A stretch of 63,904 nucleotides of DNA, the filler included, from Octopus bimaculoides (taxonomy: Eukaryota): assembly GCF_001194135.2 (NCBI RefSeq). It is 9 parts of 7 records of this genome, joined end to end, with 100 filler letters (N's around TTAATTAATTAA, not from the genome) between each part and the next. Parts side by side here need not be neighbours in the genome. Positions count along the whole stretch, not along the records: positions 1 to 25,624 come from NC_069001.1; 8 more parts are not named here. One strand, given 5' to 3'. Both the position numbers and the translations under genes were made by a program. Below the pieces are notes generated by a model, which had not been told where the DNA came from, made no database searches, and saw nothing but the letters and a program-made list of their open reading frames with translations. Positions 1,278 through 25,624 of this stretch are shown here, in pieces; positions within the stretch are counted from its first letter, which is position 1; every line of letters begins with the position of its first letter.

Positions 1278-1460
1278 ATGCCACGCACAAAAAATTGAGC
1301 AGAACCGTCAGATTTTCAAAGAGGTCGTATTGTTGGGCAATCTGAGGCTGGTCTTAGCCAGCGAAAAATTGCCGAAAATCTTCAAATTCCTGTTGCTATT
1401 GTTAAGAGAATTATAGTGCAATTTAAAAGCCAAGGAAAAGAATCAACAGATTCTCATCCC
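1278..1460 (+). mobile_element. Tc1-family transposase N-terminal HTH fragment (fossil)
   Basis: Reads [53 protein letters not shown], a typical Tc1 paired-like HTH start with an in-frame stop at codon 7. Cut off by the antisense RTE fragment. Confidence 0.7.
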
Positions 1461-1815
1461 AGCTGGAGCAAGGACACAGCCTTGCTTTACCCTGTTTTTT
1501 ATTTGGAAGGCGGCTGATGTCGAACCATTGTGCTGTATGATTCCTTGCATATCATCATGGAAAGATTTGATGATCTTCAGCAGCTTTGGTGGACATCCGA
1601 TTTTTTGGAGCAGGATGAAGAGGCCTTTTCTACTTACCAAGTCAAAGGCCATATATAATGGCATTTTCTGCTCTCTGGACTTCTCCTGAAGTTGGCGTAT
1701 GGAGAATATTATGTCAATAGTTAATCTGCTTCTTCTAAAGCCACACTGCGATTCTGGATAAATTCAAGAAGCAAGCAGTTGTAGCCTGTACAGGATAACG
1801 CAAGCAAAGGTCTTT
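1461..1815 (-). mobile_element. RTE-clade (BovB-like) LINE reverse-transcriptase fragment
   Basis: Minus strand encodes IYPESQCGFR...IDIIFSIRQLQEKSREQKMPLY..AFDLVSRKGL...VKQGCVLAP (RT motifs, with frameshifts). Confidence 0.85.
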
Positions 1816-4318: not shown

Positions 4319-4328
4319 ATAAATTATT

Positions 4329-4745
4329 TTATTCTTTTATTCTTTTATTCTTTTATTCTTTTATTCTTTTATTCTTTTACTTGTTTCAGTCATTTGACTG
4401 TGGCCAGCATCACTTTGGAGGGTTTTTTTTTTAGTTGACAAAATCAACCCCAGGGCTTAATTTTTTAAAGCCTAGTACTGATTCTATTGGTCTCTTTTGC
4501 TGAACTGCTATATTACAGGGATGCAAACACACCAACACTGGTTGTCAAGCAGTGATGGGGGTGGGAGTGACAGACATAAAGACACACACACATCGATGTA
4601 TACATATATATATGAAGGGCTTCTTTCAGTTTCTGTCTACTAAATCCACTCACAAGGCTTTGGTTGGCCCAGTGTAGAAGACACTTGTCTAAGGTGCCAC
4701 GTAGTGAGACTGAACCCAGAACCATGTGGTTGAGAAGCAACACAT
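4329..4745 (-). mobile_element. SINE family A with expanded 8-mer tail
   Basis: Reverse complement of family A. The tail is about 6 tandem copies of ttctttta at 4329-4380. Confidence 0.85.
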
Positions 4746-4884
4746 GTGCCTATATATATATATACACAAACACACAATCATGCCTGTACATATATATATA
4801 TATATATATATACTGGGTAATGCCAGGTGTATCAGCAAAATTGTCCAAATTTTAGATTTAGTTTCATAGCTTTATATCTCAGGA

Positions 4885-6210: not shown

Positions 6211-6539
6211 AGAGAGAAAGCGAGAGAAGTGAGACATACGTGCAAAAGTGTGCCACCCACATCTTCTGATTTTATTACTTAAAAACTTTCAAACAAATGA
6301 GTATATTTTAATGAAATTTTCTATAATTGGAGTAGACTAAAACTATATCAGAAATACATGAGGGAAAAAATAAATAAAAGGTAACCAAACAGAAAACATC
6401 CATATTTTCTTTTATCCAAAACCAGGAACTCTCCAGCACCCGTATACACTATGCACCATACATACACATATACTCGAGCGCATGTGTAAATGCACAAGTG
6501 CATATTCCTCATTAGTCACAAAAGCCGCAAGCTTTCACT

Positions 6540-6742
6540 GACTTTTCGGACTGCGCATGTGCAACAGGAATCGATTCACGCCTCCGCCTTCAACTGGAAA
6601 TGGAATTACTTTTCAAAACAATCAGTTTCATTTCGAAAGAGATCATAATTTACTGACGGAAAAGCACCTATATTTATCCAGTGGTAACCATATATATGAC
6701 TACCATCTCTGACTCCTTAATAATCACTGTAATTCATACGAG
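6540..6742 (+). promoter_or_regulatory. putative promoter and non-coding exon 1 of ZNF-A (donor acgag|gtattt at 6742/6743)
   Basis: Blocks tgcgcatgtgcaac, atcataatttactgacgga and atacgag|gtattttt are conserved in inverted form at 18961-19165 upstream of ZNF-B. tgcgcatgtgca (6552-6563) resembles the NRF1/Ewg palindrome. TSS not locatable from sequence. Confidence 0.55.
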
Positions 6743-7929
6743 GTATTTTTCTTAGTGTTTTTTTTTTCATTCGATCCGTTTTTGTTTTGTTTTCTTTTCA
6801 GTTTCATTAATATAACTTTCGGTGAATATGACGAATTAAGGTGTAATTTCGAAGATCTGAGAAATGTGTAGAAACATGATGTTTTTACTTGACATAGTGA
6901 AATGAAATCGAAACATTGTTTACTACAGTCGTGATATTGAAGTGATGACAAACAAAGGAACTCCATAATTTTAATGATTCTCATACAATTAATGCTTTTT
7001 TTTTTTTTCTAATGTCGGTATTTAATCAATTGCTTCTGTGTTACCCGAATGGGGGTTTTTCCCCCTTTCCTTGATCCTTGTTTTGTTAACTCTTAAACGT
7101 TGTGTTCCTGATTTTGTTTCGAAATGGAAACGAAATATTATTTACTTACGGAGAGAAAATATTTTCATTTCAAAAGCACATGTATTACGAGAATAGAAAA
7201 ATACAGTACAGTACCTTACATGTGTTTAATTATAAACAACGTTAAAGAAAAGAAATGAAGATGGAATAACGTGTAATATTTAGGAGAAATGATAGATCTT
7301 GTATGTCTGCAACGACGTTCTTCTCTGTCTGAATTGACCTGGGGTTAAACAGTATTCAACCGACAGACAATGGAATACCTTCCTGGACAGAAAGCCCCAA
7401 TGTACACAATTCTATAGTTTAACAAATAATCTGATTGTGTTACTGTTATCTCTGAAGTATAGAGCTCGCATGAGATTGTCTGATTTAATTTTAAATACAA
7501 ATTTAAAGTTCAAATGTTGATGCAAATGTTTATATTTAAAGTTTTATCAATACAGAATTATAGTAAATTTTCCATCGTTGAAATCAACTTATGAGTATCT
7601 CCTATATCTTATACTGTTTCTCTTATTTCAGAAATATCAGATGACATTGGCATAAAGATATATCATGTTTTACAAAGTTTAGGAAATTGTTACACAAAAT
7701 GGATATAATTTGTGATAGAATTGGTGTGACTTGAGACCATTAGCAAAATTTCTTTGCTTCACTGCCTGGAATATCCTCAAGAGTTGGTTGCATTCCATTT
7801 AAACTTGGACATATTTACAAAAGAGGCTGCAGTATCTTTAAACATCAACAAAGATCACGTTTTATGGAAATGTAGAAATACTTCAAACGCCACAAGACCA
7901 AGAGACGAAGTTGACAGAGAAGAAGAATA

Positions 7930-9381
7930 ATGGAAAATGAATTCTGTGAGAAACCAATTGAAATCAAAACAGAATCAGACAGCGCTGGTTTTCCAGATGA
8001 GATGCAGAATGAGACAGAAGAAATGTCATATTCCTGTGATGTCTATAAAAAGTCGATCTCTCAAAAACATCACCTAACTCATCACAAACGTATTCATACA
8101 GGAGAAAAACCATACCACTGTGATGTCTGTGGTAAATCGTTTCCGAGAAGAGATTATTTAAAGGTACACAAAAATATACACACTGGAGAGAAACCATACC
8201 ACTGTGATATCTGTGGAAAATCATTTTCCAACAGTGGTGACTTAAATACTCACAAACGTATTCATACAGGAGAGAAGCCATATCACTGTGATGTCTGTGG
8301 TAAATCATTCTCTCAAAATGGTAACTTTAATGCTCACAAGCGCATTCATACAGGAGAGAAACCATATCACTGTAACGTCTGTGGTAAATCGTTTTGTAAA
8401 GGTAGTAACTTAAATAATCACAAGCGTATTCATTCAGGAGAGAAACCATATCGGTGTGATATCTGTGGTAAGTCATTCTCTATGAGTTGTACTTTAAATA
8501 AACACAAACGTATTCATACAGGAGAAAAACCATACCACTGTGATATTTGTGGTAAATCATTCTCTAGAAGTGGTAACTTCAATTCTCACAAACGTATTCA
8601 TTCAGGAGAGAGACCATATTATTGTGATAGCTGTGGTAAATCTTTCTCTCGAATTGGTAACTTAAATGCTCACAAACGTATTCATACAGGTGACAGAGCA
8701 TATGAATGTAGTATCTGTGGTAAATCATTCACTGAAAGTGGTAATTTAAATGCCCACGTACGTACCCATACAGGAGAGAAACCATTCCATTGTGATATCT
8801 GTGGTAAATCATTCTCTGAAAGTGGTAGTGTAAACACCCACAAACGTACACATACAGGAGAGAAACCACATCACTGCGATATCTGTGGTAAATCATTCTC
8901 TGAAAGTGGTAACTTAAATACCCACAAACGTACTCATACAGGAGAGAAACCATATCACTGTGATGTTTGTGGTAAATCATTCTCTCAAATTACTAGCGTT
9001 AATACTCACAAATGTATTTGTACGCGAGATAAACCATACCACTGTGATATCTGTGATAAATCCTTTTTTACGAGTGGTAACTTGAATTCTCACAAACATA
9101 CACATACAGAAGAGAAACGATATCACTGTGATATCTGTGGTAAATCTTACTCTCACAGTAGTAAAGTAAATATACACAAGCGTACTCATACAGGAGAGAA
9201 ACCTTACAAGTGTGATATCTGTGGTAAATCATTTGCTCAAAGTGGTAACTTTAATGCTCACAAACGTATTCATACAGGAGAAAAACCATATCACTGTGAT
9301 AGCTGTGGTAAACCATTCTCTAAAAAGAGTTACCTAACTACACACCAGCATATTTGTACAAGAAAGACATCATTTCACTGA
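7930..9381 (+). CDS. C2H2 zinc-finger protein ZNF-A (483 aa; 13 C2H2 + 2 C2HC fingers, 1 degenerate N-terminal finger, no KRAB/BTB/SCAN)
   Basis: Uninterrupted ORF of 28-aa repeats YxCxxCGKSFxxxxxLxxHxRxH-TGEKP. Acceptor ttatttcag at 7631 is conserved in the paralogs, so the CDS lies in one exon. Confidence 0.95.
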
Positions 9382-10130
9382 GATATCTGTGGTAAAGTAT
9401 TTTTTAAAAGTGGTACCTTGAATACTCATGAATACTTTCTCACAGGACATAAGTAATACTATTGGGATATCTGTGGTATGCCATTTCCTACAAAGGATAA
9501 CTCAGATTCTCACAAATGTATTCATTCAGGACAGAAAGTGTATGAGTGTGGCATCTATAATAAACCATTTTCTAAAAGGGTTACCTTAAATACTTGTGAA
9601 CATATTCATACAGGAAAGAAACCATACGACTGTGATTTGTGGTAAATCATTTTTCAGTTCCAAGTAAGCTAGGGGCACACATATTCATACAGGAGAAAAG
9701 CCATATGGGTCTATAGCTGTGGCAAATCATTCAACATGTTCACTTCAAGAAGCAATTACAGATTCATATAAGAGAAAAACCATATCATTGCAATATCCAT
9801 GGTAAATCTTGCTCTCAAAGTAGTGAATTAATTAAATATGAATATGTTGATATAGAAGGAAAACCATTTCACAGTGATATCTGTGACAAATCCTATTCTG
9901 AAAGAAGTCATTTAATACTCATAAATGATTTGATACAGGAGAGACACTATTTCACTGTAATATCTGTGGCAAATTGTTTTCTAGAGGTGGTACCTAAACT
10001 AAGCATAAACATATTTATACAGGTGAGAAGCCATTTCAATGTGAAATTTTTGGGAGCTCATTCTCTCATTTAAGTGCTTTTAACAATCACAGATATGCTT
10101 GTGGAGCAGAGAGACTGTTTCTCTTCAATA
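9373..10130 (+). pseudogene. about 9 fossil zinc-finger repeats downstream of the ZNF-A stop
   Basis: The stop TGA (9379-9381) replaces the first Cys codon of the next finger (FH*DICGK). The 84-bp repeat continues with stops and frameshifts at about 9457, 9541, 9625, 9704, 9783, 9867, 9952 and 10034. Confidence 0.9.
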
Positions 10131-10625
10131 TCATCATTACATCATCTTGTCAACAATATTTTATTGTGTTGATTTGAATATAATTCATACTCTCATTTGT
10201 TTATCACATTAACAATAGATTCTGAAATGAAGGAACTGTTGGTGGTGTGTTTGTGAGGGAGAGAAAGAAAGATGGTTGGTAGCAGGAAGTAAGATATACA
10301 AAGCTAGTCAAAAGAATAAACTACTACTTGATTTTGATCTGCTGGTATATTTCTGTGCATTTGACAAGGACATACTTCTGTATACTTCTAAAACTGTACC
10401 TATATTGTTTATTATAACATTTATTTCTTTTTAAGTTTATATAATTTTCTGTTATGCTCAGTCACTTTTTAATCCCTAAGTGTACTGTTATTTTAGAAAG
10501 CAGTTACCCAATCAATGTTAAATGTTCATTTGATGAGTTGGTAATCAAAAATTCTTAGAAACGATTGCTTTATTGTGGATACTCATGACTGTCTAACAAA
10601 CAGTTACGTGTAACTCTGAATAACA

Positions 10626-10959
10626 GTACTAGGACAAAATCCCCCAGCAGTCAATTTCCCCTGGGATATTAGTGGTATTTCATCTGTCTTTAAGTTCTGA
10701 GTTCAAATTCCACCGAGGTTGACTTTGCCTTTCATTCTTTCGGAGTTGATAAATTAAGTACCAGTTGCATACTGGAGTTGATTTAATCGACTGGCCCCCT
10801 CCCCCAAAATTTTGGGCTTTGTGTCTCGAGTAGAAAAGATTATTCTTTCTTTACAATAAAAATATTTTAGGAAAGTGAAATTTTATTTTAAAAAATTTTA
10901 AATATTTATTACTTGATATTTTTGTTTAAAATTTGTCCGGTGGGATTTTGTCCTGATAC
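10626..10959. mobile_element. MITE-like element with 13-bp terminal inverted repeats, containing a SINE-B insertion (about 10680-10845, +)
   Basis: aggacaaaatccc (10631-10643) and gggattttgtcct (10942-10954) are perfect inverted copies. The interior matches SINE family B (gagttcaaattccaccgaggttgactttgcc). Confidence 0.55.
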
Positions 10960-11289
10960 CCCAAATAACAGCTTGTGAAATTTTTCTGCTTCAATAAAAC
11001 AGTATTACACTCTACCTTTGGTATTCAAATAGTTTTTTCTCCACCATGTTTTGCATTTATGTGCCCACATCAGGAAATGTTTGTTTCCAATTTGTTTAAT
11101 TTTCACCAGCAAACTGACCAAGAGTATATATTTACATACATCGTTAAAGTGGCTATATACTTCAGGCCAGCATCAGTGTTGAGTTGTGTGTACTTACCTG
11201 TGCAATAATTGGTGCTAAACCAATTGTAACTTACTGTGGAAAATGAATGTGAGAAGGAGAGTCTTTCAAATATTGAACCGACTGAGGAA

Positions 11290-13020
11290 CCATCAGATAA
11301 GACAATTAAGGCTATGAAAAGACAGGGAAAGCTGCTGGACCATCAGGATTCACTGCCAAGATAATTAAAATAGTTGTGTAGGATACAGCCTAGTCACCAG
11401 TATAGCGAATTAGGTTATTCTGGAAGGTGCCATCCCTAATGACTGGTGTAGTAGTATTATAGTTAGCAGCTACAAGGGTAAAGGTGATACCTTAGATAGA
11501 AACAACTATAGAGGTATCAAATTGCTGGATCGGGTCATGAAAGTTACAGAGAACTATAGCTCAATTGATGAGGAATAGAATTAAACTAGATGAGATGCAG
11601 TTTGCTTTTGTACCTGGGAAGAGCACCACAAATGCCATCTTCCTAGTGAGACAGCTGCTGGAAAAGTATTTGGCCAAAAGTAAGCCATTGTGCTTAGCTT
11701 TTGTCAACCTGGAGAAAGCTTTTGACAGAGTCCCTCACTCTGTTATCTGGTGGATTCTAAAGGAGTTAGTAGGAGTGGTTTGTTAGAGCTGTACAAGCCA
11801 TGTGCAGTGGTGCTGTCAGTAAGGTGAGAGTCAGCCATGAATACAGTGATGAATTTAGCATGCAAGTAGGGGTTCACCAAGGTTCAGTTCTCAGCCCACT
11901 CTTATTCATAACAGACCTTTAGGTGATTGAATTCAAAACTGGATGCCTGTGGGAATTACTTTACGCTGATAACCTTGCCTGTCATTGCAGAACTTGTAGC
12001 AAAATTGGAGAAATTCTAGGTATGGAAGCAAAACATGGAATCAAAGGGCCTTAAAATTAACCTAACAAAGACCAAAGTTGTTGCTAGCAAGAATGTAGAG
12101 AAGACTCTCTTTCCATCAGGTAAATGGCCCTGCTCAGTAAGTAGGAAAGGAGTTGAGAGTAATTCCATTTGCNNNNNNNNNNNNNNNNNNNNNNNNNNNN
12201 NNNNNNNNNNNNNNNNNNNNNNNNNNNNNNNNNNNNNNNNNNNNNNNNNNNNNNNNNNNNNNNNNNNNNNNNNNNNNNNNNNNNNNNNNNNNNNNNNNNN
12301 NNNNNNNNNNNNNNNNNNNNNNNNNNNNNNNNNNGTAAATGGCCCTGCTCAGTAAGTAGGAAAGGAGTTGAGAGTAATTCCATTTGCTGCACCCAGTGTA
12401 AGCTATGGGCACATAAGAAGTGCAGTGGAATCACAGGTAGATTAACAGATAAAGTTGTCTTTATATATAGATATGCAGGAACAATAAGCTCTAAGGGCAT
12501 GCAGGACTTAGACTCTCTTGAGGTTGTAGATATTTTCTGTTACCTAGATGACAAAATTAGCCGTGGTGGAGGATGCTCTGAAAGTATTGTTTCTATAACA
12601 ATAATAGGATGGAGGTTCAGAGAGCTGTTACCTCTGTTGGTAACAAAACGATTCTCTCTCAGAGTGAAAGGTAGACTGTATGATGCTTGCGTACAAACGG
12701 CTTTATTCCATAGTAGTGAGACATGGGCTCTGAATGCAGAAGACATGCATAGACCAGAGAGAAATGAAGGTGATATGCTCCGTTGGATGTGCAATATCAG
12801 TTGCATGTACAACAACGTGCAAATGTGTTGAGAGAAAAGTTGGGCACAAGAGGAATCAAATGCAGTATGCAAGAGAGAAAGCTACGTTGGTTTGGACATG
12901 TGATGTGTATGAATGAAAACAGCTGGAGGAAGACATGGGATCAAGTGAGGACTGATCTCAGGATGTTGGGCCTCACAGAGGAAATGACAATGGACTCAGA
13001 TGTCTGGTGATATGAGGTTT
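11290..13020 (+). mobile_element. RTE-clade LINE, 5'-truncated and decayed (RT to 3' end)
   Basis: Encodes QFAFVPGKSTTNAIFLVRQLLEKYLAKSKPLCLAFVNLEKAFDRVP, GVHQGSVLSPLLF, ELLYADN, KGLKINLTKTKV, KGRLYDACV, ERKLRWFGHV. Multiple frameshifts; one assembly gap. Confidence 0.92.
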
Positions 13021-13849
13021 TTGAGAAGACCTGCCCATATCAGCAAAAGTTCTAGAAGTGCTGAGTTCTACCCACATGAACAATTCTGCCAGCTCACCAT
13101 CCCAATATTGTTATTAATATTGTAACTATCACTTTTATAGCTCTGGCATAAATCATTTCTTGCCTCTCTGTCCAAATAATCTGTATGGCAATATTGCTGA
13201 AACAGTTGCTTCCTTTTGGCAGTAACACAATAACCATCATTATATTTGTGTAATATTTCTCTATGAATACTAATTAAAGGCTTTCAACATGGAGATAATA
13301 AAAACAAAAGTATTAGTTTTGATATCAACAACAGAAATGAAATTAAAGAAAAAAACAAATAATGTGATTTTTTTGGTTTGATTTATTTGTGGAAGATGCC
13401 TGGAAAAGTCTGACGTTTTGAGTCTATGCTCTTCAATACAAAGGATTAAAAGGANNNNNNNNNNNNNNNNNNNNNNNNNNNNNNNNNNNNNNNNNNNNNN
13501 NNNNNNNNNNNNNNNNNNNNNNNNNNNNNNNNNNNNNNNNNNNNNNNNNNNNNNNNNNNNNNNNNNNNNNNNNNNNNNNNNNNNNNNNNNNNNNNNNNNN
13601 NNNNNNNNNNNNNNNNNNNNNNNNNNNNNNNNNNNNNNNNNNNNNNNGTCTATGTTTCTTAACATGCTTTGATGTGTTGCATCATCATTGTAAACAAAAG
13701 GCTCATCCATAGTGTCATTTGTTTCAGTTTCTCCATGACAGGCCCGAGTCAAAATGAGTCCTTAAAACAAGAGTCAGTAAATATACACAGCTACATGTCT
13801 TGAATACTTTTCTACCATTTTAACACTCAAATATGTGTTTGTGTGTATA

Positions 13850-14085
13850 TCATAATTATCATTTTAATGTCTACTTTTCTATGCCTGCATGGGTCAAACA
13901 ATTCAGTGATGCAAATTTCCTACAGTCATATACCTTTCGTGTCACCAATCCTCACCAGTTTTGAAGCAAGGTAACACATCGCTGTGGCCAACCAAGTTCT
14001 TCATGGAAGATTTGAAACAAATGGCACTGGTTGCATGACAGGGACACCTCACTTCTAACTATTACATAACGTCAACACAAGGACA
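13850..14085. repeat. dispersed repeat family D (starts with (CAT)n), diverged copy
   Basis: Similar to 38600-38880, 40635-40780, 41600-41800 and 42852-43057 (catcatcatcgtttaacgtccgctttccatgc...). Confidence 0.55.
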
Positions 14086-14384
14086 CATACACACACACAC
14101 ACACACAAAGGAGCTGGATTGCACTAGTTAGAGACTAGGAAGAGAAATACCCATCATATGGGCAAAAGTTATGCATGGATACACTAGCTACAGAATTCCA
14201 GCAACATTGACAGGAAGAATAGCCTCTCCTGGACATGCAATATATACATCACATCTCATCTAGAAGGTTAACCTTTTACTCTCCATGAACAGGATTGAGG
14301 AACTAAATACTCAATTAATGAAACACATACATCTGATTCAAAATGCCCACACTGTAATACAAAACATTGATTATGCCATGCTAG

Positions 14385-14649
14385 TGCTGAAGATATCACA
14401 CATAACATCAGTTGTAGTTATATATAAAATATATTGTTAGAACACCATTATAACATTGTGATAGCTTCTTTCTTGTGTCTACAGATATCAGTGATATGGC
14501 TTCTCTTTCATTTTAATATGTTCGTGTCTTGCTTAGCCATCACCAACAGAAATTTATTTACGAAATATCAAGTTGATATGTATTCTATACTGTATAAACA
14601 AGTGTGAGGTATGTTCCAGAGGAATAGCCAAAAAATATCTGTGATATGG
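14385..14649 (-). pseudogene. fossil zinc-finger remnants downstream of the ZNF-B stop
   Basis: Minus strand has ccatatcacagatatt, gaaagagaagccatatcactgatatctgt and tgtgatatc, which are decayed EKPYHCDIC coding motifs. Confidence 0.6.
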
Positions 14650-16674
14650 TCACGCCTGTATATGAAGACGTTTGTGTCTAGTTAATTCAAACTTTCTAGA
14701 GAATGATTTGCCACAAATGTCACAGAGGTACAGTTTTTCTGCTCTGTGGATGTATTTGTGATTAGACAAAGTACTTATCTGAGAGAATGATCTGCCACAA
14801 ATGTCACAGTGATGTGGTTTCTCACCTGTATGAGTGCGTTTGTGCAGAGTTAAGTGAACATTTTGAGAGAAAGATTTCCCACAAATAACACAGAGATATG
14901 GCTTCTCACCAGTATGTGTGCGTTTGTGTATAGTTAAATATTGTTGAGAAAATGATTTACCACAGATATCACACTGATATGCCTCCTCAGCTGCAGGATT
15001 GGGTTTGTGTATAATTGAAACCTCACCAGAAGAGAATGATTCACTAAAATCATCATGGGCGTCTGGTCCCTCTCCTGCATGGACATATTTATGTTTAATT
15101 AAGTATCTATTGGTAGAAAATGCTTTCTCACAGACGTCACACTGATATGGCTTGTCACCTGTATGAGTGCGTTTGTGTCTGTATAAGTCGTTACTTTGAG
15201 AGAATGATTTCCCACAGATAGCACAATGATATGGCCGTTCGCCTGTATGAGTGCGTTTGTGTTTGGCTAAATCATTACTTTGAGAGAATGATTTTCCACA
15301 AATAACACAGTGATATGTTTTCTCATCAATATGAGTGTGTTTGTGTTTAGTTAAATATCCATTTCTGGAGAATGACTGACCACAGATGTCACACTGGAAT
15401 GGTTTTGCTCCTGTATGGATACGTTTATGCTTAGTTAAGGCATGACTTTTAGAAAATGATTTACCACAGATATCACAGTGATATGGTTTTTCTCCTGTAT
15501 GAATATTTTTGTGCTTAATTAAGGTACTACCGTCAGAAAACGATTTACCACAAACATCACAGTGATATGGTGTCTCTCCTGTATGAATACGCCTATGTTT
15601 ATGTAAAGCACTGCCTTCAGAGAAAGACTTCCCACAGATATCACAATGATATGGCTTTTCTCCTGTATGAACACGCTTATGTTTAATCAAGTCACTGCTT
15701 GTAGAGCAAGATTTACCACAAATATCACAGTGATATGGTTTTTCTCCTGTATGGATCCGTATGTGCTTATTCAAGTCAACATTTTGACTGAATGATTTTC
15801 CACAGATATTACAGGAATAGGGTTTTTCTCCTGTATGAACATATATGTGTCTCCTTAATTTACTTTTATCTGGGAATGATTTACCACAAATCTCACACTG
15901 GTATGGTCTCTCTCCTGTGTGGATACTTCTGTGTTTAGTTAGGGACGATGTGTGAGAGAAAGATTTACCACAGATATCACACTCGTATGGTTTGTATCCT
16001 GCATGAATAGATTTGTGAGTATTCAAGGTATCACTTCTAGAAAATGATTTACCACAGATATCACAATAATACGGCTTGTCTCCTGTATGAATACGTGTGT
16101 GGGTATTTAAGGCACCAATGTTAAAAAATGATTTACCACAGATATCACAGTGATGTGGTTTCTCTCTTGTATGAATATGTTTGTGAGTATTCAAGGTACC
16201 TCTTTCAGAGAATGATTTACCACAGACACCACAGGGGTATGGTTTCTCTCCTGTATGAATACGTTTGTGACTATTTAAGGTACCTCTTTCAGAAAAGGAT
16301 TTTCCACAGATATCACAGTGATGTGGTTTCTCTCCTGTATGAATACGTTTGTGACTATTTAAATTACCACTTGTAGAGAATGATTTACCACAGATATCAC
16401 AATGATATGGCTTCTCTCCTGTGTGAATACGTTTGTGAGTATTTAAGTTACTATTTTTAGAAAATGATTTGCCACAGATATCACAATTGTATGGTTTCTC
16501 TCTGGTATGAATATATTTGTGATCAGTTGGATGACTTTTTTGAGAGAACGACTTTTCACACATATCATAGGAACATGATCTTTCTTTTATCTCTTTCAGC
16601 ATCTCATCAGGAAAATCGATGCTTTCAGTCTCTGTTTTAATTTCAATTGGCTTCTCACAGAATTCCTTTTCCAT
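14650..16674 (-). CDS. C2H2 zinc-finger protein ZNF-B (674 aa from ATG at 16674; 21 fingers, one internal dead-finger spacer, degenerate N-terminal finger)
   Basis: Uninterrupted finger array. The ATG aligns with the ZNF-A ATG ([15 protein letters not shown] vs [15 protein letters not shown]). The track start at 16713 is a TTG. Acceptor AG at 17019-17020. Confidence 0.95.
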
Positions 16675-17144
16675 AATTATTCCTCTTCGTTTCTTCTTGT
16701 GTTTTCTTAACAATTATTTCTACTGCTATGATTCCATAGAACGTGATCTTTGTTGGTGTCTGAAGACACTGCAATCTCTTGTGAAAATTTCGCTATGTTT
16801 CATAACAAAACAACCAACTCGCAAACATATTCCTGGCTGGGATGTAGAAGAATTTTGCTAATGGTCTCAGGTCACAATAACAATATTTCACACCAATTCC
16901 ATCACAGATTTATAGAAACAGGATTATATCCATCCTATGTAACAACTTCCTTTAAAAGATGATAAATATTGATGATACATCTGAGGAAATGCTTTTATAC
17001 CAATGTCATCTGATATTTCTGAAATAATAGAGAAACAGTATAAGATAAAGGGGATATCTAAAAGTAGATTCAATGATGGAAAATTTACTACATTTCAATA
17101 TTGATAAACTGTAAATATAATTTTTTTTTTAATGGGATCGGATG

Positions 17145-17462
17145 GGTAAGGCATACCCTACACGCACACAACGATAAAATAAAATTTTATTTAAATATAG
17201 TCTCAGCCGAATTCATATTTCAACAAAATTACATCAAGAGTTATTTCCCCTGCTTATCGTTTATACATATGTAACGAAGAATAAATTATTTTGATTCACT
17301 CGTCCGCCAGTTTTGAAGATAATCAAAGCAAAATCATGAGTTCGAAGCACTCACCCAATGAGTATTTCTGACAAATTAGGTGAAAATCCATTCAGCCGTT
17401 TTCTAGTAATTTTGCAAACACACAGATGAGTGACTACAATACCCTGCTTTCGCAGAGTAAAC
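17145..17462 (+). mobile_element. possible Helentron-associated (HINE/DINE-like) non-autonomous element in the ZNF-B intron
   Basis: Absent from the homologous ZNF-A intron. Ends in tacaataccctgctttcgcagagtaaa with an accctgc/gcagagt hairpin, the architecture of HINE 3' ends. Confidence 0.4.
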
Positions 17463-17485
17463 ATTGACGTCCGCATTTCAGCTCT

Positions 17486-17675
17486 AAATTTGGATGGAAT
17501 TCTGGTTTAAGAACCCCTCCTAATCTTTTTATATTTTGGAATCTTCAGAAAATTTTGCTAATTTGTGTTCTACACATGTTTTGAAAAATTCCCAAATGTT
17601 TTGAAAATTTCCAATAATAAAAAGTTATGTAGGATGACATGGGGTGCTTTAACCAGAATTCCGCCGCCTAAATTT
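17486..17675. mobile_element. MITE-like element with about 30-bp imperfect TIRs
   Basis: ggaattctggtttaagaacccc (ending 17517) matches the reverse complement of ggggtgctttaaccagaattcc (from 17641) at 20/22. Confidence 0.6.
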
Positions 17676-18976
17676 GTTAAGATTACATTAAAGAATAACA
17701 TGTGAGGTTTATATATCACTGGCTGCAGCAACACGATCAGATTATTTATATTAAATTATAGAGTAGGGGTCGTGGGGCTTTCTGGCTAAGAAGATCATTC
17801 ACCGTAGGTCGATTAAAGTTTAACCCCAGGTCAATTCTGACTGAGCAAAACATCATTGCAGACATACAAGATCCACCATTTCTCCTAAATATTACAAGTG
17901 ATTCCCTCTTCATTCCTTTTCTTTGAGAAATGAAAATATTTTCTCCCTGGAGTAAACAAAAATAGAGTTTCCGTTTCAAAACTACATCAGGAACTAGATT
18001 TTACGATGTAAGAATGTTTGAGAATTAATTTAAGATTGAAATCGTAAAAGAATGTGTATTGCGGGAGAGAAAACAAACAAAAACAATTGGTATTCAATTG
18101 TTTTGAGTCTCAGACTTGTCAAGATTCGTTCATTAGTTTCTGTGTGCGTGACAGCACATGTTGTCAACTGTAAACACAAGAAATATTGGCACTATCATGC
18201 TATTAGCTGTCAGAAGTGAAAGTGCTCACTGCTAGTGAAGTATCTGTCTGTCTGCCTGCCTGTTGCTGGCCTGTCGATTCTTTGGCTACTGACAGCTAAT
18301 ACCATGACTGGCCGGAGCGAGCTATACGTCTGTCTGTCTGTCTATCTATCTATCTACTACTCGAAAGTTCGCGCGTCCGCGCTAGCTAGTCGTGAGTGGT
18401 CATAAATAATACGGCTTTTTCGACGCACATACATGCTATACATACTTCTTTTTCTGTACATATGTGTGTGTGTGGTACGTAGATAACAAAAACAACATCG
18501 CATTTTAAACTTGAGAAAAGCGTTGCATATTTATAATGCGCAAGTCATACATGTATGTATGCATTTTTGTGCATGTATGCATGTGCGGCTAGGGTTCGAT
18601 CTTACAACCCGATAGTACCGGGAATGCAGTCCACGTCTTTCACCTCCGCCCTTCATTTGTGTATGTAGTAAATTTTCAAGAAGAAAACGAGATCGACATC
18701 GAAAAATCCTCTTTCTAAATAGTACAAATATTGCTAGCCGCATACGAATGCATGCACAAAAATGCACCAGAAATTACGGACTTCTTATGGTTGTAACCAC
18801 CGCAATATCATGTCGGTAGCAAACAACGGTTCGACTCCATTTCACTATGTCAAGTAAACAATCATGTTTTTATACATTCCTCATATCTTCGAAATTATGC
18901 CGGAATTCTTCACATTTCCCAAAGTTATAATATGAAAGAAAACGATTGAATGAAGATAACATTAAGAAAAAAATAC

Positions 18977-19165
18977 CTCGTATAAGTCACATTATATTAT
19001 TAAGTCACTGATGGTGGTATATATTGTTAGTAATACAATGCACTGTATAAATATGAGTCTTGTCCGTCAGTAAATTATGATTTCTGCTAAAATAAAAATA
19101 ATAGTTTAGCAATGACATTCAATGCCAATATTGTTTTAGGCATCCGGTTGCACATGCGCATTAGC
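18977..19165 (-). promoter_or_regulatory. putative promoter and non-coding exon 1 of ZNF-B (donor at 18977/18976)
   Basis: Inverted homolog of 6540-6742. tgcacatgcgca at 19149-19160; donor acgag|gtattt conserved. Confidence 0.55.
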
Positions 19166-19739
19166 AATGTCAGTGGAAGCTGTCGTGTTCACATGTGAAT
19201 GTGGCTTATTAGTATGTGTGTATTATGATAGACGACACATGTTAAAGTGGCGATAAACATTACTTCTCAGTATAAATACTTCTTGCCTCTCTAATAGAGA
19301 TTTTCTTAACGAGGGATCCGTCCGTAGAAACCAAGCCAAAATTGGACTGGAGCCTCGTACAGCACGCAGCCCCTGTTTATGTCAAACCAATGTCTCACCA
19401 TCAAGAAGGGATGCTAAAGGATGATGACACACATACACATACATACATAGCACACCTTGTATATACAAATAGATGAACGACCACTACTCTTCAGTTTATC
19501 AAAGACTTAAATAAAGAAGATTAAAAGACAGAAAATAGAAAGCTTTAGGCAATGCGTTAAGTTTAATAAATTCTTTATATTTCAGTAGCAGAAGTCCATC
19601 TTCAGAAGAAAACAACAGCCTAAGAAAAGTCCAGCTATGTAGGTTCTGTTAAGCCATTCAAATTCCCTAGCGTTTATGTAACAGCAGCAGTCGCTCTCCA
19701 AACGTAGGTGGAATCGACGTTCCACGCATTCAGGTAAAC

Positions 19740-19980
19740 CAGTGGTTCAGATCCATATGGCCCCCTGAGGGTCCACACCAGATTTTTGGGGAATCCCACA
19801 CAATAAAAAAGTAAATTGGGGATCCACAATAGTATTTTAAGGGCCTCTGAAAAATTTTTTGCTTTAGACGTAGATATTGGTGAAACGGCGTAGTAGTAGT
19901 AGTAGTCCGAGGGTTGGTGTAAACAAATCTCAGCTACGAAACGGCCGTCACCCTGTGGATATCAACTGGTGAAATATATT
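19740..19980 (+). mobile_element. non-autonomous hAT-like element fragment
   Basis: Starts cagtggtt...ccatatggccccctgagggtccac, resembling CAGTGGTTCCCAAC-type hAT termini. A similar terminus occurs at 63881. Confidence 0.4.
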
Positions 19981-20049
19981 CATCTCCTGACCTTTTTTAT
20001 ATGATGTAATATTTTACTTGTTTCATTCATGCCGGTGTTTTTTGGAAAG

Positions 20050-20674
20050 GGGGGGGGGGCTGTAGACGAGCTATTGATGGATAATAGTGCAGGTTTTCGC
20101 TCAGAGCAGCTGAGAGAGATGCTTGGAAGATGGAGCACAAGGCGCTTCTTCAGAGCTGCATACCGGCCCGGTGAAAACGAGATTGTGGAACGGCACCACC
20201 GTACGATTAAAGCCAAGGCTGAGAAGGCACGAATCTCCCCTACGGAGGCAGTCTTCTGGTACAGTATGCCACCCAGGGTAGGGCAAACCGAAGAGTCGGT
20301 CCCGCACAGGGCCATATTCCGCTACAAATGGAGACACCCGAGCGTGGTGCCACAACAGCAAGTGGTAGAATGGGTTACATCTGTGCAGGTTGGAGATGAA
20401 GTGTGGGCGAAGCCCCCGAACGCTCGGTGCACAACGCAATGGGAAAAAAGGGAAAGTGAGCGGAATCAGTACCCCGAATAATGTATCAGTGGATGGAATG
20501 CCGCGTCACGTCCTGGATATTCGAAAGGTGATCAGCTTTTCCATGACGAAGGGGTGCGGGAAGGCGGCCCCAAGGCCCTATAGAGATCTCTCTAAGGGAA
20601 CGTTGCTTCCATCCAGGTGGATGGACGATTACGAGAAAGAACAAGGGAGCAGTGATCTTTAGATCAGGGGTGAG
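20050..20674 (+). mobile_element. Gypsy/Ty3 LTR retrotransposon integrase C-terminal fragment and polypurine tract
   Basis: LLMDNSAGFRSEQLREMLGRW...AAYRPGENEIVERHHRTIK is the integrase core with its 2nd D and E; VGDEVWAK...NNVSVDGMPRHVLDIR follows. Purine-rich aggggtgag precedes the LTR. Confidence 0.85.
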
Positions 20675-20902
20675 TGTGGTGGAAGAAGGATTGGAAGCGA
20701 CGAGAAATGACGTCACGTCAGCAAGTGAGAAGAAAAGTTTTTCCTTGCGTTTTGGTTTTCCTGGAGACGCTAAAAGTGACAGACGCCAGTCGCAGACATA
20801 GAGAAATTGTGAAAACACGGGTGAAGAATTGATTAATCTGCCGGCGGTACCCGATTGCAGGTCGAGGTAAGAGCAATTTTATTTACGTGCCTTCAAACTA
20901 CA
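20675..20902 (+). mobile_element. 3' LTR of the Gypsy element (228 bp)
   Basis: Begins TGTGGT directly after the PPT and ends ACTACA (TG...CA, imperfect terminal inverted repeat). Confidence 0.65.
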
Positions 20903-21923
20903 ATTTCAAAGCAAGAAATTCTTCTCGAATGTTGAATTTTGCAATTAATCTACGTATAAATATTGCCATCTGAGCAGTATTAGACAGCTCACTTGTCTCA
21001 TAAATACCTAATAAATGCAATACGAATTCTGTTGAATCATATTTTAGAGAATTTTAAATATCATCAGCTATATTTTTAATACGATTAGAAACAGTTCTTC
21101 TTGATAAGCTAATATTTAAAAACAAAGTTTTTCTGGGCCTATATTCTCAACAGCAGTAAGAATACATTCTTTCACAAATACACCATCGCTATGTGGTTTT
21201 GGGTTTTTTTAGCAATATTTTCGCATACCGCAAAACTAGCTCAAGTTACTGATTCACTTTCAAGAATTGATCTTTTAAAAAAAAAGCTTGTCTTTTGGTC
21301 AGGTTCTTTCAGATTTTCATAGGTCTTATGCTTACTCACAAATTACCTCTTAATATTCTATTTCTTTATGAACAGCTACTTGTTTATTGCAAATAAGACA
21401 AATGCATTTGCTATCTATTTTAATAAAAAAAATAAAGCTCAGTCCATTTTTCATCAAAGCACGTTCACCAGCGCTTCTTTTCCTTTTTAGGATTTTTATA
21501 ACCACTTACCATATTGATGAGGGTATCGAAAAACTGTGTTAACAAAGTTATAAACCGGTTAAATTTATAGTATTATCACTTTCGGAATTTTTGTTATTAC
21601 CACTGCCTTGGAAAAACAAAATCCAACTAGCTCGTTGTCGTAATGCATGCGTTCAGTGTTGTAAAAATAGTAAAAAAAATCAAGATATTGTTTGATTCTG
21701 CAGGGTTTAACTTGCTTTTTTTCTCTATCCTTTGCCCACACGGGCGTTGACAAGCGAGTGAGTAGGGAAGTATAACTGACAAATAGATGGCAGATGAACG
21801 TAATTCCTCGATTTTTTTTTATTGCCCACGCGGGGATAAATATAGAGGTTATACATTACAAAGACAATACAAATATATAACCTCTAGATTTAGTCTCGCT
21901 TGTCAGTAGGGAAGGGAGATAAC

Positions 21924-22013
21924 TTTGGTTTTCCTGGAGACGCTAATAGTGATAGACGCCAGTCGTAGACATAGAGAAGTTGTGAAAAACACGTGAAAAA
22001 TTGATCAATCTGC
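21924..22013 (+). repeat. second partial copy of the LTR interior (20751-20841)
   Basis: tttggttttcctggagacgctaa..gtga.agacgccagtcg.agacatagagaa.ttgtgaaaa is shared, with several substitutions. Confidence 0.85.
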
Positions 22014-23085
22014 GGTAATTCTGTTGACCCTCTTGACACCGACTGATGCAAAGTAACACATCGCTGTGGCCAATCAAGTTCTTCATGGAAGATTTGAAAC
22101 AAATGGCATTGCTTGTATAGCAGGGACACCTCACTTCCAACCATCACAATGTCAAAACAAGGACATATACACATACACAAGGGAGCTGGATTGAACTACT
22201 TGGAGACTTGGAAGAAAAATACCCATCATATGGGCAGAAAGTTATGCATGGATACACTAGCTAGAGAATGCCAGCAACATTGGTAGGAATAATAGCTTCT
22301 CCTGGACATGCAAAATATGTCATATCTCATCTAGAAGGCTAAGCATTTGCTCTCCAACAACAGTGACAACTAAATACCTGATTAATGAAACATATACATT
22401 TGATTCTAAACTCCCAGGCTGTAGTAGAAAATGATGATTATGATTATGCCATGCTAGTGTTGAAGATATCACCCATGATATGGTTTCTCTTTGGTATGAA
22501 TATATTTGTGATCAGTTAGGTGACTTTTTACACATATCACAGGTATATGATGTTTCTGCTATCTCTTTCTGCATCTCATCAGGAAAATCAATGCTTTCAG
22601 TCTGTTTTAATTTGAACTGACTTCTCACAGAATTCATTTTTCATAACCTCTTGTGAAAATTTCTCTGTTTTTAACAATCAACTTGCAAGCATATTCCTGA
22701 CAGGAATGTAGGAGAATTTTCCTAATGGTCTCAGGCAGGGGTTGTAAATAATTGATTTCCAATCAATCAATTTTAATTAGGATACAATCAATTTTTGCAA
22801 TAAATTGTCAATTAGTTTGGCCAGCATAAAAACATATTTTGTAGTGTTAGCTTCGATTTAGATAAGAGCCAAAATTACAGGAAAATAAGGGCACATCTTA
22901 TAGTTTTTGAAACCTTTATTATCAGAAAACATTCAAAGTTCAATTTTCTTGATTTGAAATAGGGAACAAACAACATGTATACTCTACATTGTACTGTGGT
23001 TGCAAAACAAATAAATTGAAGGTCTTTAATTGAAAGAGTTTCTCAAACGAGTAGCACAATTAAAATTTACTAATATAGCAAAACG

Positions 23086-24618
23086 TCATGAACGATTGCA
23101 GATCTCTGAAACTAGGTCTTCATCCCAGAAAGCGCGATTAACTTTTAGAAATAGTTGCATTTCTAAATTCATTGGTGTTAAGTATTGCCAAAAATCATTA
23201 AAAGCATAACCTTCTGAGCTGAAGAAACGTTCCAAGATGTTGGATGTTGGTAACAAAAATCTACAGTTCAGATACTGCTGAGGTGAAATCTTATTTTTTT
23301 TCTGTTTTTTCAAACAAATTGTAGCAAAATCATCATCTTCTACAGGTAAATCAGACTGTTGTGACATGTCTGTCACCACTTTCAGCTGATGTAGAGCAGC
23401 CACTTCATCTGCAGTTAGCTCTGCTTCTGCATGTTGTAAAATTTTCACAGCTCCACTTTCAAAATTTGGGCTGTGCACAATGGCTGCCAATGGAAGCAAA
23501 TATTTTTTAAACTCCTCATAAGGATACAATGCAAGAATTTCGTCAAAAAGAATTCGAGCATCTCCCAAATCTATTTCTGTTCTTTGCAAGGCAACTGTTA
23601 CTGAGCGTAACTTTCCTAAATTGTCTTTCAGAGTCTGCAGATCATTATGATCGAGTTGAGTCAATAGATAATTAACCAGCTTTGGATCGCCTTGAAAAGA
23701 GTCTAAAAACGGCTTGAGTTGGATGTACCTTTCAATCATGTCATAAGTACTGGACCAACGGGTTTTATTTCTTTGTATAGGTTGCAAAGGCGTTTTTTCC
23801 TGAAGTTTACCTGCCAGTTTTAATGACTTTAGCTTGCCCATCAACGTATTAATTTTATTAAGCAGAACTTCCTGCTTATCAAGATAAGCAGAAACAGCTA
23901 GATTGAATTTATGAAAGGCACATCCAATCAATGGTATTCTACACAAATTTGCTATAGATTTATTCACTTCAGTATTGTCACCAGTAATAGCAACAACATT
24001 TTCTAAATTTTTGTTATAGACACTTAACACATACTCTATAAATTCAACATAATCAGAAGCAGTGAATGATGTTTCACTTACCATTGGTGAAAATGCCAGC
24101 AAAACAGTACAATAGTCATTTTGATAATTACACGAATACGATGCAAAAAGTCCAATGAAATGTGTCGAACCCTTAGTCCAACCGTCAATTACCAACAAAA
24201 ATTTACTTGGAAGTTCATCAGATATTTTCTTTTCCACTTCTTGAGTAAGTTTCTCCATGTATTTCTTTAAGGTTACATTTGTCATACTTCCCAAGTTCGT
24301 GTACTTATGAGTCAGTGGGTCTTCAGTAAAGGAAAATGGTTTTAAACCAACACATACCCACTCAATCCAACCATAAACATTTAAAGCTGAGCGACTGACC
24401 AAACTATTTCTTGGTGAAAGAAAACTTGATGAAGATGGTTGTCCAGTTGCTTGTGTTGTAGAATACTCTGGGTGCTGATTTTTTATATGATTCATAAGGT
24501 TTGTCCACCCAGTTCCTTTTTTCTGGGTCAACTTTTTTCCACACTTGCATTTCCATACATGTTCACTATCTGTTTGGTTAAAATATTTTCTGACAATTTG
24601 CTCATTTTCACGCGGCAT
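23086..24618 (-). CDS. hAT-family transposase (510 aa)
   Basis: BED-type finger (WKCKC...NLMNHIKNQH), catalytic IDGWT and TGDN, CxxH (CAFH), RW motif (TRWSSTYDM), and PTSNILERFFS with the catalytic E in the dimerisation domain. No stops or frameshifts. Confidence 0.92.
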   Translation of the reverse strand: MPRENEQIVRKYFNQTDSEHVWKCKCGKKLTQKKGTGWTNLMNHIKNQHPEYSTTQATGQPSSSSFLSPRNSLVSRSALNVYGWIEWVCVGLKPFSFTEDPLTHKYTNLGSMTNVTLKKYMEKLTQEVEKKISDELPSKFLLVIDGWTKGSTHFIGLFASYSCNYQNDYCTVLLAFSPMVSETSFTASDYVEFIEYVLSVYNKNLENVVAITGDNTEVNKSIANLCRIPLIGCAFHKFNLAVSAYLDKQEVLLNKINTLMGKLKSLKLAGKLQEKTPLQPIQRNKTRWSSTYDMIERYIQLKPFLDSFQGDPKLVNYLLTQLDHNDLQTLKDNLGKLRSVTVALQRTEIDLGDARILFDEILALYPYEEFKKYLLPLAAIVHSPNFESGAVKILQHAEAELTADEVAALHQLKVVTDMSQQSDLPVEDDDFATICLKKQKKNKISPQQYLNCRFLLPTSNILERFFSSEGYAFNDFWQYLTPMNLEMQLFLKVNRAFWDEDLVSEICNRS

Positions 24619-24772
24619 GGGTTAGTTTAAAATAAAAGATATTTCACTACAGTTTAAAATAGAAGATATTTCACCACACTACTGATGAAAAAGTCTAATT
24701 CAGTTAATATATTGGAGCGAAATTCAAGATACAACTGCGTTGCAGGCGAAGTTACGATTTAATGACTTGAAG

Positions 24773-25010
24773 ACAGAATGTGTGAATCATTCTTGGCAGA
24801 ACCAAGAATCACTCGACAGCGATTATTTGACAACATACACAATAGCCAATTCCCAAACATCACAGAATGTGTGAATCATTCTCGGAAGTCCTAACCAAGC
24901 GTCAACACTTGGCAGCGGTTATTTGACAACACACACAATAGCCAATTCTTAAGCACGACAGAATGTGTGAACTATTCTCAGCAGTCAGAACAAAACGTCA
25001 ACACAATACT
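24773..25010. repeat. about 2.5-copy tandem repeat (89-96 bp unit) inside the hAT, upstream of the transposase ATG
   Basis: acagaatgtgtgaa recurs at 24773, 24862 and 24958; ttatttgacaaca.acacaatagccaattc recurs twice. Confidence 0.9.
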
Positions 25011-25418
25011 TCCAATAATAATTAAACGTCGAATGGAGTATGAGCCATTTGAAAATTTTCCGCTGACAATGTTGCAATTAATTGATATGATAGCAACCAA
25101 TTATTTAATTGGCAATATGACTCCAATCAATTAATTGAACCAATATAGTGCAATTAATTTTTCATCAATTAATTTTTTTACAACTCCTGGTCTCAGGTCA
25201 CAACAGCAACATTTCACACCAATTCCATCACAAATTTATAGAAGCAGGATTACATCCATCCTATGTAACAACTTCCTTTAAAAGATGATAAATATTGATG
25301 ATACATCTGAAGAAATACTTTTATACCAATGTCATCTGATATTTCTGAAATAATAGAGAAACAGTATAAGATAAAGGGGATATCTAAAAGTAGATTCAAT
25401 GATGGAAAATTTACTACA

Positions 25419-25624
25419 TTTCAACAGTTGCAAGAGAAATACCTAGCCAAGGATAAACCTCTGTACCTGGCTTTCGTTGACATGGAGAAAGCCTTTGACA
25501 GGGTCCCCCGATCCCTTATCTGGTGGTCAATGAGGAAACTTGGGATAGAAGAATGGCTAGTGAGAGCTGTGCGAGCCATGTACAGAGATGCGGCCAGTAA
25601 GGTGAGGGTTGGAAATGAGTACAG
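25419..25624 (+). mobile_element. RTE-clade LINE RT fragment (5'-truncated, runs into a gap)
   Basis: Reads QLQEKYLAKDKPLYLAFVDMEKAFDRVPRSLIWWSMRKLGIEEWLVRAVRAMYRDAASKVRVGNEY with no lesions. Abuts the ZNF-C intron. Confidence 0.9.

Follow-up and report, generated by a model that had tools for sequence, protein, structure and literature searches.

Three copies of one C2H2 poly-zinc-finger gene, here called ZNF-A, ZNF-B and ZNF-C, lie close together in the genome of Octopus bimaculoides. They very probably represent a local birth-and-death cluster of an Octopus-specific, Krueppel-type family, with two intact genes and one dead copy. The window, by which we mean the whole stretch of 63,904 nucleotides (nt) that was analysed, is made of nine joined parts of this genome, and the cluster is contained in the first of them (positions 1 to 25,624; NC_069001.1), at positions 6540-25418. 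Exact-protein look-ups of ZNF-A and ZNF-B place the locus in GCA_001194135.2, on chromosome CM046621.1 at about 32.257-32.283 Mb, where record position 32,257,266 is window position 1. Both genes are called in the genome record, with one coding range each, encoding 483 amino acids (aa) for ZNF-A and 674 aa for ZNF-B. ZNF-A is on the plus strand and ZNF-B on the minus strand, making the two convergent, and the remnant of ZNF-C is also on the minus strand. A preliminary description of this DNA had seen birth, truncation and death next to each other at the locus, and the picture holds, with A and B shortened yet open and C wrecked.

Duplication history of the cluster

The shared blocks were located by blastn self-comparison together with alignments. 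ZNF-A and ZNF-B are connected by four blastn blocks that are collinear, inverted in orientation, and extend well outside the coding sequence. These pair 6600-6971 with 19123-18771 (73% identity), 7104-7171 with 17994-17927 (79.7%), 7244-7505 with 17924-17669 (76.5%) and 7530-9411 with 17120-15193. The second and third are on the intron side, and the third covers the segments 7255-7350 and 17811-17915, which the preliminary description had named when it claimed that A and B share upstream and intron blocks through a DNA-level duplication with an inversion. The collinear inverted non-coding blocks bear out this claim. Between ZNF-B and ZNF-C the blocks are direct, and they comprise the 3' flank (13962-14403 with 22044-22476 on the minus strand; 83%), the leader with unit 0 (16476-16676 with 22464-22646; 81%), part of the 5' untranslated region (UTR; 16773-16871 with 22645-22735; 80%) and an upstream segment (16862-17098 with 25188-25424; 96.6%). 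Measured from the 3' flank, the tandem B/C offset is 8,082 bp.

Non-coding DNA on the promoter side, in the intron and in the flanks was copied along with the genes. The comparison therefore supports duplications at the level of genomic DNA, with one inversion (A versus B/C) and a tandem duplication that relates B to C. The order is suggested by the informative three-way sites. In three regions, B and C agree against A at 27, 20 and 15 such sites, versus 2-11 for the other patterns, and the tree (A,(B,C)) is favoured for this reason.

Conserved landmarks are found upstream of the coding sequence. A block at 6488-6990 (plus strand) in A, which may hold a promoter and a first non-coding exon, is homologous to 19242-18768 (minus strand) in B. 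The string TGCGCATGTGCAAC occurs only at 6552-6565 in A and 19147-19160 (minus strand) in B, and the donor-like TACGAG/GTATTTTT, in which the slash marks the putative junction, only at 6737-6750 in A and 18969-18982 (minus strand) in B. Windowed identity upstream of A and B is patchy. A, B and C have an acceptor-like string of 28 nt, TTATTTCAG/AAATATCAGATGACATTGG, without any difference between them, at 7623-7650 (plus) in A, 17000-17027 (minus) in B and 25326-25353 (minus) in C. It stands within a non-coding background that is 73-83% identical, and it gave 0 matches in shuffles. Taken together, these landmarks would be in keeping with a gene in which a promoter and a non-coding first exon are separated by an intron from a large second exon, the latter having a 5' UTR of about 300 nt. 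The earlier claim that A, B and C have 5' exon sequence, an acceptor and a leader in common agrees with the identical 28-mer and with leaders that are 62-65% identical to that of A, where exon and acceptor are names for what the conserved DNA appears to be.

The upstream segment of ZNF-C (25190-25424, minus strand), which includes the 28-mer, stands out. This 237-bp island is 96-97% identical to 16862-17098 in B, while the adjacent homologous segments are 80-87% identical, and in C it is bounded exactly by a hAT-like transposon on one side and by a long interspersed nuclear element (LINE) on the other. Gene conversion, confined to this tract by the heterologies on either side, would be the simplest explanation of the pattern, and we assume it here.

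From these relations, the ancestral gene had one large exon carrying the 5' UTR, a leader of 33 aa and about 25 finger units, preceded by conserved DNA that may have held a promoter and a first exon without coding sequence. Copying of genomic DNA produced the inverted copy first (A versus B/C) and the tandem copy second (B versus C, 8.08 kb apart). Both arrays were later shortened and remodelled, A losing about 9 units to a nonsense change and B at least 3 to a frameshift in a linker. Unit duplication or conversion inside the ZNF-A array is implied as well, because the fingers that A retains belong to one homogeneous class. The death of C involved a 2,073-bp deletion, frameshifting deletions in the leader, and insertions of the hAT-like element and a 5'-truncated LINE in its 5' region.

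Two shortened genes

The open reading frame (ORF) of ZNF-A occupies 7930-9381 on the plus strand. It encodes an acidic leader, a degenerate unit 0 with Tyr in place of its second Cys, and 15 fingers at regular spacing, 13 of them C2H2 and 2 of them C2HC, with Cys instead of the final His. Its stop codon (9379-9381) stands at the first Cys codon of unit 16, as a TGA in place of the TGT of the unit consensus. Beyond it lies a decayed array tail of about 9 former finger units (9382-10145, plus strand) with several stops and at least 7 insertions or deletions (indels). This is what was to be expected from the earlier proposal that a nonsense change had truncated A.

The tail provides a useful measure of decay within the same gene. 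Identity to the unit consensus at the first, second and third codon positions is 0.87/0.90/0.83 in the ORF and 0.77/0.70/0.74 in the tail, so that the coding pattern present in the ORF is lost beyond the stop. The indels of the tail fall within about 770 nt, versus 0 in the 1,452 nt of the ORF, where about 13 would be expected at the tail rate. An ORF so free of indels argues that the truncated ZNF-A has been kept by selection.

ZNF-B (14650-16674, minus strand) is longer. After the leader comes an atypical N-terminal unit 0 of the form CX4C, followed by 17 fingers, a dead in-frame unit whose Cys and His ligands are lost, a CX2CX11H finger and 3 further fingers. The count is therefore 20 canonical CX2CX12HX3H fingers and one CX2CX11HX3H finger, with 0 indels in 2,025 nt. 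The TGA stop arises in a linker, from a local 2-nt insertion and a 2-nt deletion. Past the stop, the segment 14394-14649 (minus strand) holds at least 3 relic units, traced over 14481-14649, with an alignment score of 94 versus a shuffle maximum of 40. The number of 21 fingers that had been given for B is right, counting the near-canonical one; the notion that B kept its array untouched has to be given up in view of the relics. As decayed units follow the stops of both A and B, both lineages began with roughly 25-26 units, and both live genes are shortened versions of that array.

ZNF-B also carries an insertion of its own within the putative intron (17120-17669, minus strand; about 550 bp), which ends in A10 and looks like a retroposon. 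A 167-bp imperfect palindrome lies inside it at 17496-17662. The insertion is 22 bp from the position at which the LINE entered C, and the near-coincidence of the two may reflect an AT-rich hotspot of retroposition in the intron.

Death of the third copy

What is left of ZNF-C (22464-22735, minus strand) is a piece of the 5' UTR, the leader and unit 0, next to a homologue of the B 3' flank at 22044-22476. The leader reads MKNEFCEKSVQIKTD and then a stop, owing to a 2-bp deletion; a 16-bp deletion has removed part of unit 0, and 96 nt are gone upstream of the ATG. At the junction (22476-22464) the CDIC codons of finger 1 pass directly into the 3'-flank homologue, and the array is absent. The earlier view that C had lost its array is thereby upheld, with leader and first unit fused straight to the sequence that in B follows the gene.

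The loss has a recognisable footprint. The 10-nt string TGTGATATCT is found at both corresponding sites in B, 16485-16476 and 14403-14394, and the array of C was lost by a deletion of 2,073 bp between the two repeats. The downstream site in B stands one unit period past the last relic unit that was traced. With the repeat present at both sites and the downstream one in register, the deletion was a unit-to-unit event, by in-register recombination or slippage between array units.

The hAT-like transposon in the 5' region of C occupies 22736-25189 (minus strand; 2,454 bp). Its terminal inverted repeats (TIRs) are 23 nt long, CAGGGGTTGTAAA... at one end and ...ACAACTCCTG at the other, with arms that are 78% complementary. 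It is flanked by a perfect 8-bp target-site duplication (TSD), CCTGAGAC, at 22728-22735 and 25190-25197, which is present as a single copy at the empty site in B. The element carries an intact ORF of 510 aa (23086-24618, minus strand) with a BED zinc finger (Pfam, E = 3e-5, above the cut-off), and 96-bp subterminal tandem repeats at 24810-25004. TSD and TIRs both agree with the hAT superfamily, with which the element shares the 8-bp TSD, short TIRs starting with CAGG, subterminal repeats and a single ORF with an N-terminal BED finger. Its ORF is short for the transposase of an autonomous hAT element. A C-terminal motif like that of the superfamily, ...ERFFS..G......L......LFLKVN, was recognised by eye; Pfam reported the BED finger as the sole match in the ORF and no hAT dimerisation domain. 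A PDB sequence search with the ORF had no match, and a single-sequence AlphaFold model of it reached a pLDDT (the confidence score of the model) of 35. The element is apparently young, and it may still be active in O. bimaculoides.

On the other side of the island, a 5'-truncated LINE with reverse-transcriptase sequence occupies 25424-25624 (plus strand) and runs into the assembly gap at the end of the piece. An ORF in C runs into the reverse transcriptase from the conserved block that precedes the coding exon, and the block was considered as antisense LINE sequence; this was rejected, as beyond the breakpoint A and B have sequence in common that is not LINE. For the same reason, the LINE is taken as a 5'-truncated insertion specific to C.

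Protein class, array remodelling and selection

Only C2H2-type domains were found in ZNF-A and ZNF-B by Pfam, with zf-C2H2 and zf-H2C2_2 matching at E values of 1e-80 to 1e-162. The units are of the Krueppel type, 28 aa of the form CX2CX12HX3H with TGEKPY-type linkers and a repeat period of 84 nt, and the regular ones number 15 in A and 20 in B. KRAB (PF01352), SCAN, BTB and ZAD gave no Pfam match in either protein, which places both outside the KRAB-ZNF genes. A hidden upstream coding exon with an effector domain is excluded by in-frame stops just upstream of each ATG, 6 codons away in A and about 17 in B. The cluster had been called KRAB-less at the outset, and rightly so.

A one-to-one correspondence of the A and B fingers in register was considered and rejected, since no diagonal appears when the identities of all A units to all B units are set out as a matrix. 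For nearly all A units, the most similar B unit is unit 1 or 2. One homogeneous finger class comprises A units 2-14 (mean identity 79%) and B units 1-6 (82%), with 79% between the genes, and B units 7-20 are diverse (69%). The recognition helices of ZNF-A are monotonous variants of xSGNLNx, with Asn at +3 in 8 of the 15 fingers.

When units are nevertheless paired by position, A and B have identical residues at 4 of 60 DNA-contact positions and at 236 of 315 scaffold positions. The preliminary description had stated that the helices of the two genes differ almost everywhere. As a count this is accurate; as evidence of substitution it is weakened, since the fingers are not one-to-one counterparts. 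For that reason, the difference between the helices reflects remodelling of the array at least as much as point substitution.

Selection was assessed from Nei-Gojobori counts over 15 in-register A/B unit pairs with a Fisher test, as ratios of nonsynonymous to synonymous differences per site (pN/pS). The scaffold has a pN/pS of 0.26 (p = 5e-24), a clear mark of purifying selection on the zinc-finger scaffold of A and B. At contact positions pN is 0.56 versus 0.13 in the scaffold (p = 5e-27), and contact pN/pS ranges from 0.85 to 1.78 across subsets, to be read with pS at about 0.47, near saturation, and with the compared units not orthologous. Contact positions are thus subject to free or accelerated change, a pattern that fits relaxed constraint as well as diversifying selection.

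The acidic leader

ZNF-A and ZNF-B begin with an acidic leader of 33 aa, of which a remnant persists in C. Amino-acid identity to the A leader is 65% for B and 62% for C. D and E make up 11 of 35 residues in A, in company with hydrophobic residues, and the leader has no Pfam match. Between A and B, leader codons 1-33 give an omega of about 0.27, and unit 0 about 0.86.

We searched 1.84 billion cluster representatives with a profile built from the leaders of A and B. The profile matches mostly through its half-finger, and among the best 150 matches 8 carry the leader at the N-terminus (positions 1-45), all of them zinc-finger proteins of O. sinensis or O. bimaculoides. The alignment of the leader-bearing proteins reads ME.ELCE...(D/E)FPDEM..K.SY.CDIC. 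We define the leader subfamily by ME(N/D/S)E(L/F)CE...(D/E)F(P/S)D(E/G)(M/I)...K.SY.CDIC directly before the first finger, and A, B and the C remnant all conform to it. Close relatives of A or B were absent from the best 150 representatives, the best match having 55% identity over a partial alignment. A search with the full-length ZNF-B protein was dominated by long vertebrate ZNFs and returned no Octopus match, the leader alone found nothing in a word-indexed database, and no published description of the leader was found.

The conserved acidic leader is a candidate for the part of the protein that recruits an effector. A stronger proposal can be made, namely that the leader is a new, Octopus-restricted effector motif, a counterpart of KRAB or FiNZ that would engage a chromatin co-factor, and that the array of A, with its homogeneous fingers rich in Asn at +3, was recently rebuilt by unit duplication to bind a periodic, A-rich repeat or transposable element (TE). 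We regard this combination as somewhat unlikely; if it were true, the locus would become a tractable entry to the question of ZNFs and TEs in cephalopods.

Weighing the account and its competitors

Several observations weigh against the account of a birth-and-death cluster with two selected genes. The contact pN/pS, 1.19 over 15 non-orthologous pairs, is not different from 1 (Fisher p = 0.46), and the support for selection on the leader is weak (Fisher p = 0.07; 33 codons). ZNF-A shows erosion, in the lost Cys of unit 0, the two C2HC fingers and the degenerate linkers near its 3' end, and these features could be early decay. The island of 96-97% identity amid flanks of 80-87% makes duplication followed by divergence an incomplete history for B and C when taken alone. 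Finally, 'promoter', 'exon 1', '5' UTR exon' and 'acceptor' are labels that we have put on conserved sequence.

Under the birth-and-death reading, A and B probably encode sequence-specific DNA-binding regulators, whose specificity would have been altered mainly by array remodelling and free change at the contact residues. Targeting of TEs by A and B is plausible from published genome-wide predictions. One competitor is an arms race with TEs, in which A and B would repress particular transposon families and their contact residues would be under positive selection, as in KRAB-ZNFs and FiNZ-ZNFs. Contacts do change about 4-5 times faster than the scaffold, and pN/pS rises to 1.4-1.8 in some subsets. 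TEs abound at the locus, genome-wide predictions have octopus ZNF motifs enriched on the consensus sequences of TEs, and the short acidic leader recalls the 28-aa, Glu-rich FiNZ domain (PMC10547256). The overall contact ratio, however, is not significantly above 1, and the comparison of A with B is confounded by fingers that are not one-to-one orthologous. Furthermore, the expression of expanded cephalopod C2H2 genes has been tied to nervous tissue and the arms race called an open question (PMC12513265). We consider an arms race possible, if doubtful. The fast turnover akin to that of KRAB-ZNF genes, which had been proposed for this cluster, is accordingly retained as far as birth and death are concerned, and stops short of neutrality being rejected at the contacts.

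A different function may be envisaged with similarly tentative confidence. A and B could be ordinary transcription factors kept for neural or developmental regulation in nervous tissue, with the TE content incidental and the leader possibly an activation motif. A composition both acidic and hydrophobic is typical of acidic activation motifs, and the leader is strongly acidic in just this manner. Expanded octopus C2H2 genes are expressed mainly in nervous tissue, across different co-expression modules (Holzinger et al. 2025, PMC12513265). The homogeneous fingers of A, with their recurrent Asn at +3, speak against ordinary promoter regulation, as they would suggest a periodic low-complexity target rather than a unique promoter site.

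It is very unlikely that all three copies are dead or dying and that A and B are ORFs merely not hit yet. The erosion of A and the decayed tails on both arrays would suit such a fate, and a collection of 15 billion proteins contains neither the A nor the B sequence in exact form. The scaffold ratio of 0.26 contradicts it, as do the codon-position pattern in the ORF that is gone from the tail, the contrast of two ORFs free of indels (1,452 nt in A and 2,025 nt in B) with at least 7 in 770 nt of tail, and the annotation of both A and B as genes. An assembly artefact of mis-joined haplotypes or collapsed or expanded repeats, which two internal gaps, large N runs at both piece ends, a 53-bp duplicate around one gap and the B/C island might bring to mind, can hardly account for A/B and B/C non-coding differences of 17-27%, far above allelic divergence, for private TE insertions with clean boundaries in each copy, the hAT-like element with its TSD among them, or for finger units none of which contains a gap.

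Relation to known zinc-finger systems

Octopus-specific expansions of C2H2 zinc fingers were reportedly described by Albertin et al. in 2015. In KRAB-ZNF genes, the KRAB domain is usually encoded on separate upstream exons. Vertebrate KRAB-ZNF clusters (human chr19 and 8q24.3; PMC2865497) resemble the octopus locus in that segments have been duplicated both in tandem and inverted, fingers have been gained and lost, and pseudogenes stand beside live genes, as well as in fast-changing contacts, a conserved scaffold and TGEKPY linkers. The octopus genes differ from KRAB-ZNFs by having no KRAB and by carrying the whole coding sequence in one exon. The turnover of the cluster therefore looks KRAB-ZNF-like, yet the defining feature, the KRAB domain itself, is absent.

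The FiNZ-ZNFs of cyprinid fish (Wells et al. 2023, PMC10547256) are comparable in having a lineage-restricted, Glu-rich N-terminus of about 30 aa with no known domain, a long C2H2 array and a large lineage-specific family. The likeness of the octopus leader to FiNZ (28 aa) is one of type only: short, Glu-rich and N-terminal, with no similarity in sequence to be expected. FiNZ genes differ from the octopus A and B in having experimental evidence of TE derepression.

Octopus-specific C2H2 expansions were treated by Holzinger et al. 2025, who left the arms race as an open question (PMC12513265), and the enrichment of octopus ZNF motifs on TEs was an in-silico prediction of Wells et al. 2023 (PMC10547256). 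The expansions, their local duplication and a possible link to repeats are already published. The present cluster matches them in species, in its KRAB-less poly-C2H2 proteins, in its clustered local copies and in a leader that further ZNFs of O. bimaculoides and O. sinensis also carry, and nothing essential differs. New relative to the family-scale papers is the base-level anatomy, with inverted and tandem duplication, decayed tails, a repeat-mediated array deletion and TE hits.

Coleoid cephalopods have one of the largest C2H2 expansions outside vertebrates. The choice between a TE arms race and neural regulatory diversification as its cause has been stated to be open (PMC12513265). The locus does not settle this question. 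It offers a dissected example of segmental duplication, array shortening, unit-to-unit array deletion, probable gene conversion and TE insertion into a dead copy, and its conserved acidic leader is a lead for effector function.

Other features of the region

Two assembly gaps lie inside the piece, and long N runs in the genome record itself bound it on both sides. Gap 1 (12173-12334) is within a LINE between A and B, and identical 53-mers stand on either side of it (12120-12172 and 12335-12387); the LINE ORF gives the identical peptide KWPCSVSRKGVESNSIC left and right of the gap. Because of the identical 53-mers, gap 1 is most likely an unmerged contig overlap rather than missing sequence. Non-coding DNA about 1 kb past the ZNF-B stop contains gap 2 (13455-13647), which is outside the B/C homology that begins at 13962. 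The ZNF frames and homology blocks are free of both gaps.

The LINE that contains gap 1 (11541-13007, plus strand) is a reverse-transcriptase fragment recognised by Pfam RVT_1, and it has about 71% DNA identity to the LINE at 25424-25624. It also encodes a weak PHD-like Cys-rich segment, below the Pfam cut-off. A further LINE fragment with a Pfam RVT_1 match lies at 1446-1763 (minus strand). Rfam and tRNA scans found nothing.

Between ZNF-B and ZNF-C, a G+C-rich patch at 20000-21000 (49% versus about 35% elsewhere) contains overlapping ORFs on both strands. One of these, at 20005-20478, includes YRPGENEIVERHHRTIK, which appears integrase-core-like by eye and has no Pfam match. An unclassified sequence of about 90 bp is present in two copies, 90% identical and 1,173 bp apart (20751-20841 and 21924-22013), just outside the B/C duplication boundary. 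Upstream of the cluster, microsatellites that are (TA)n-rich or composed of ATTCTTTT are found at 1-87, 4323-4379 and 4738-4820.

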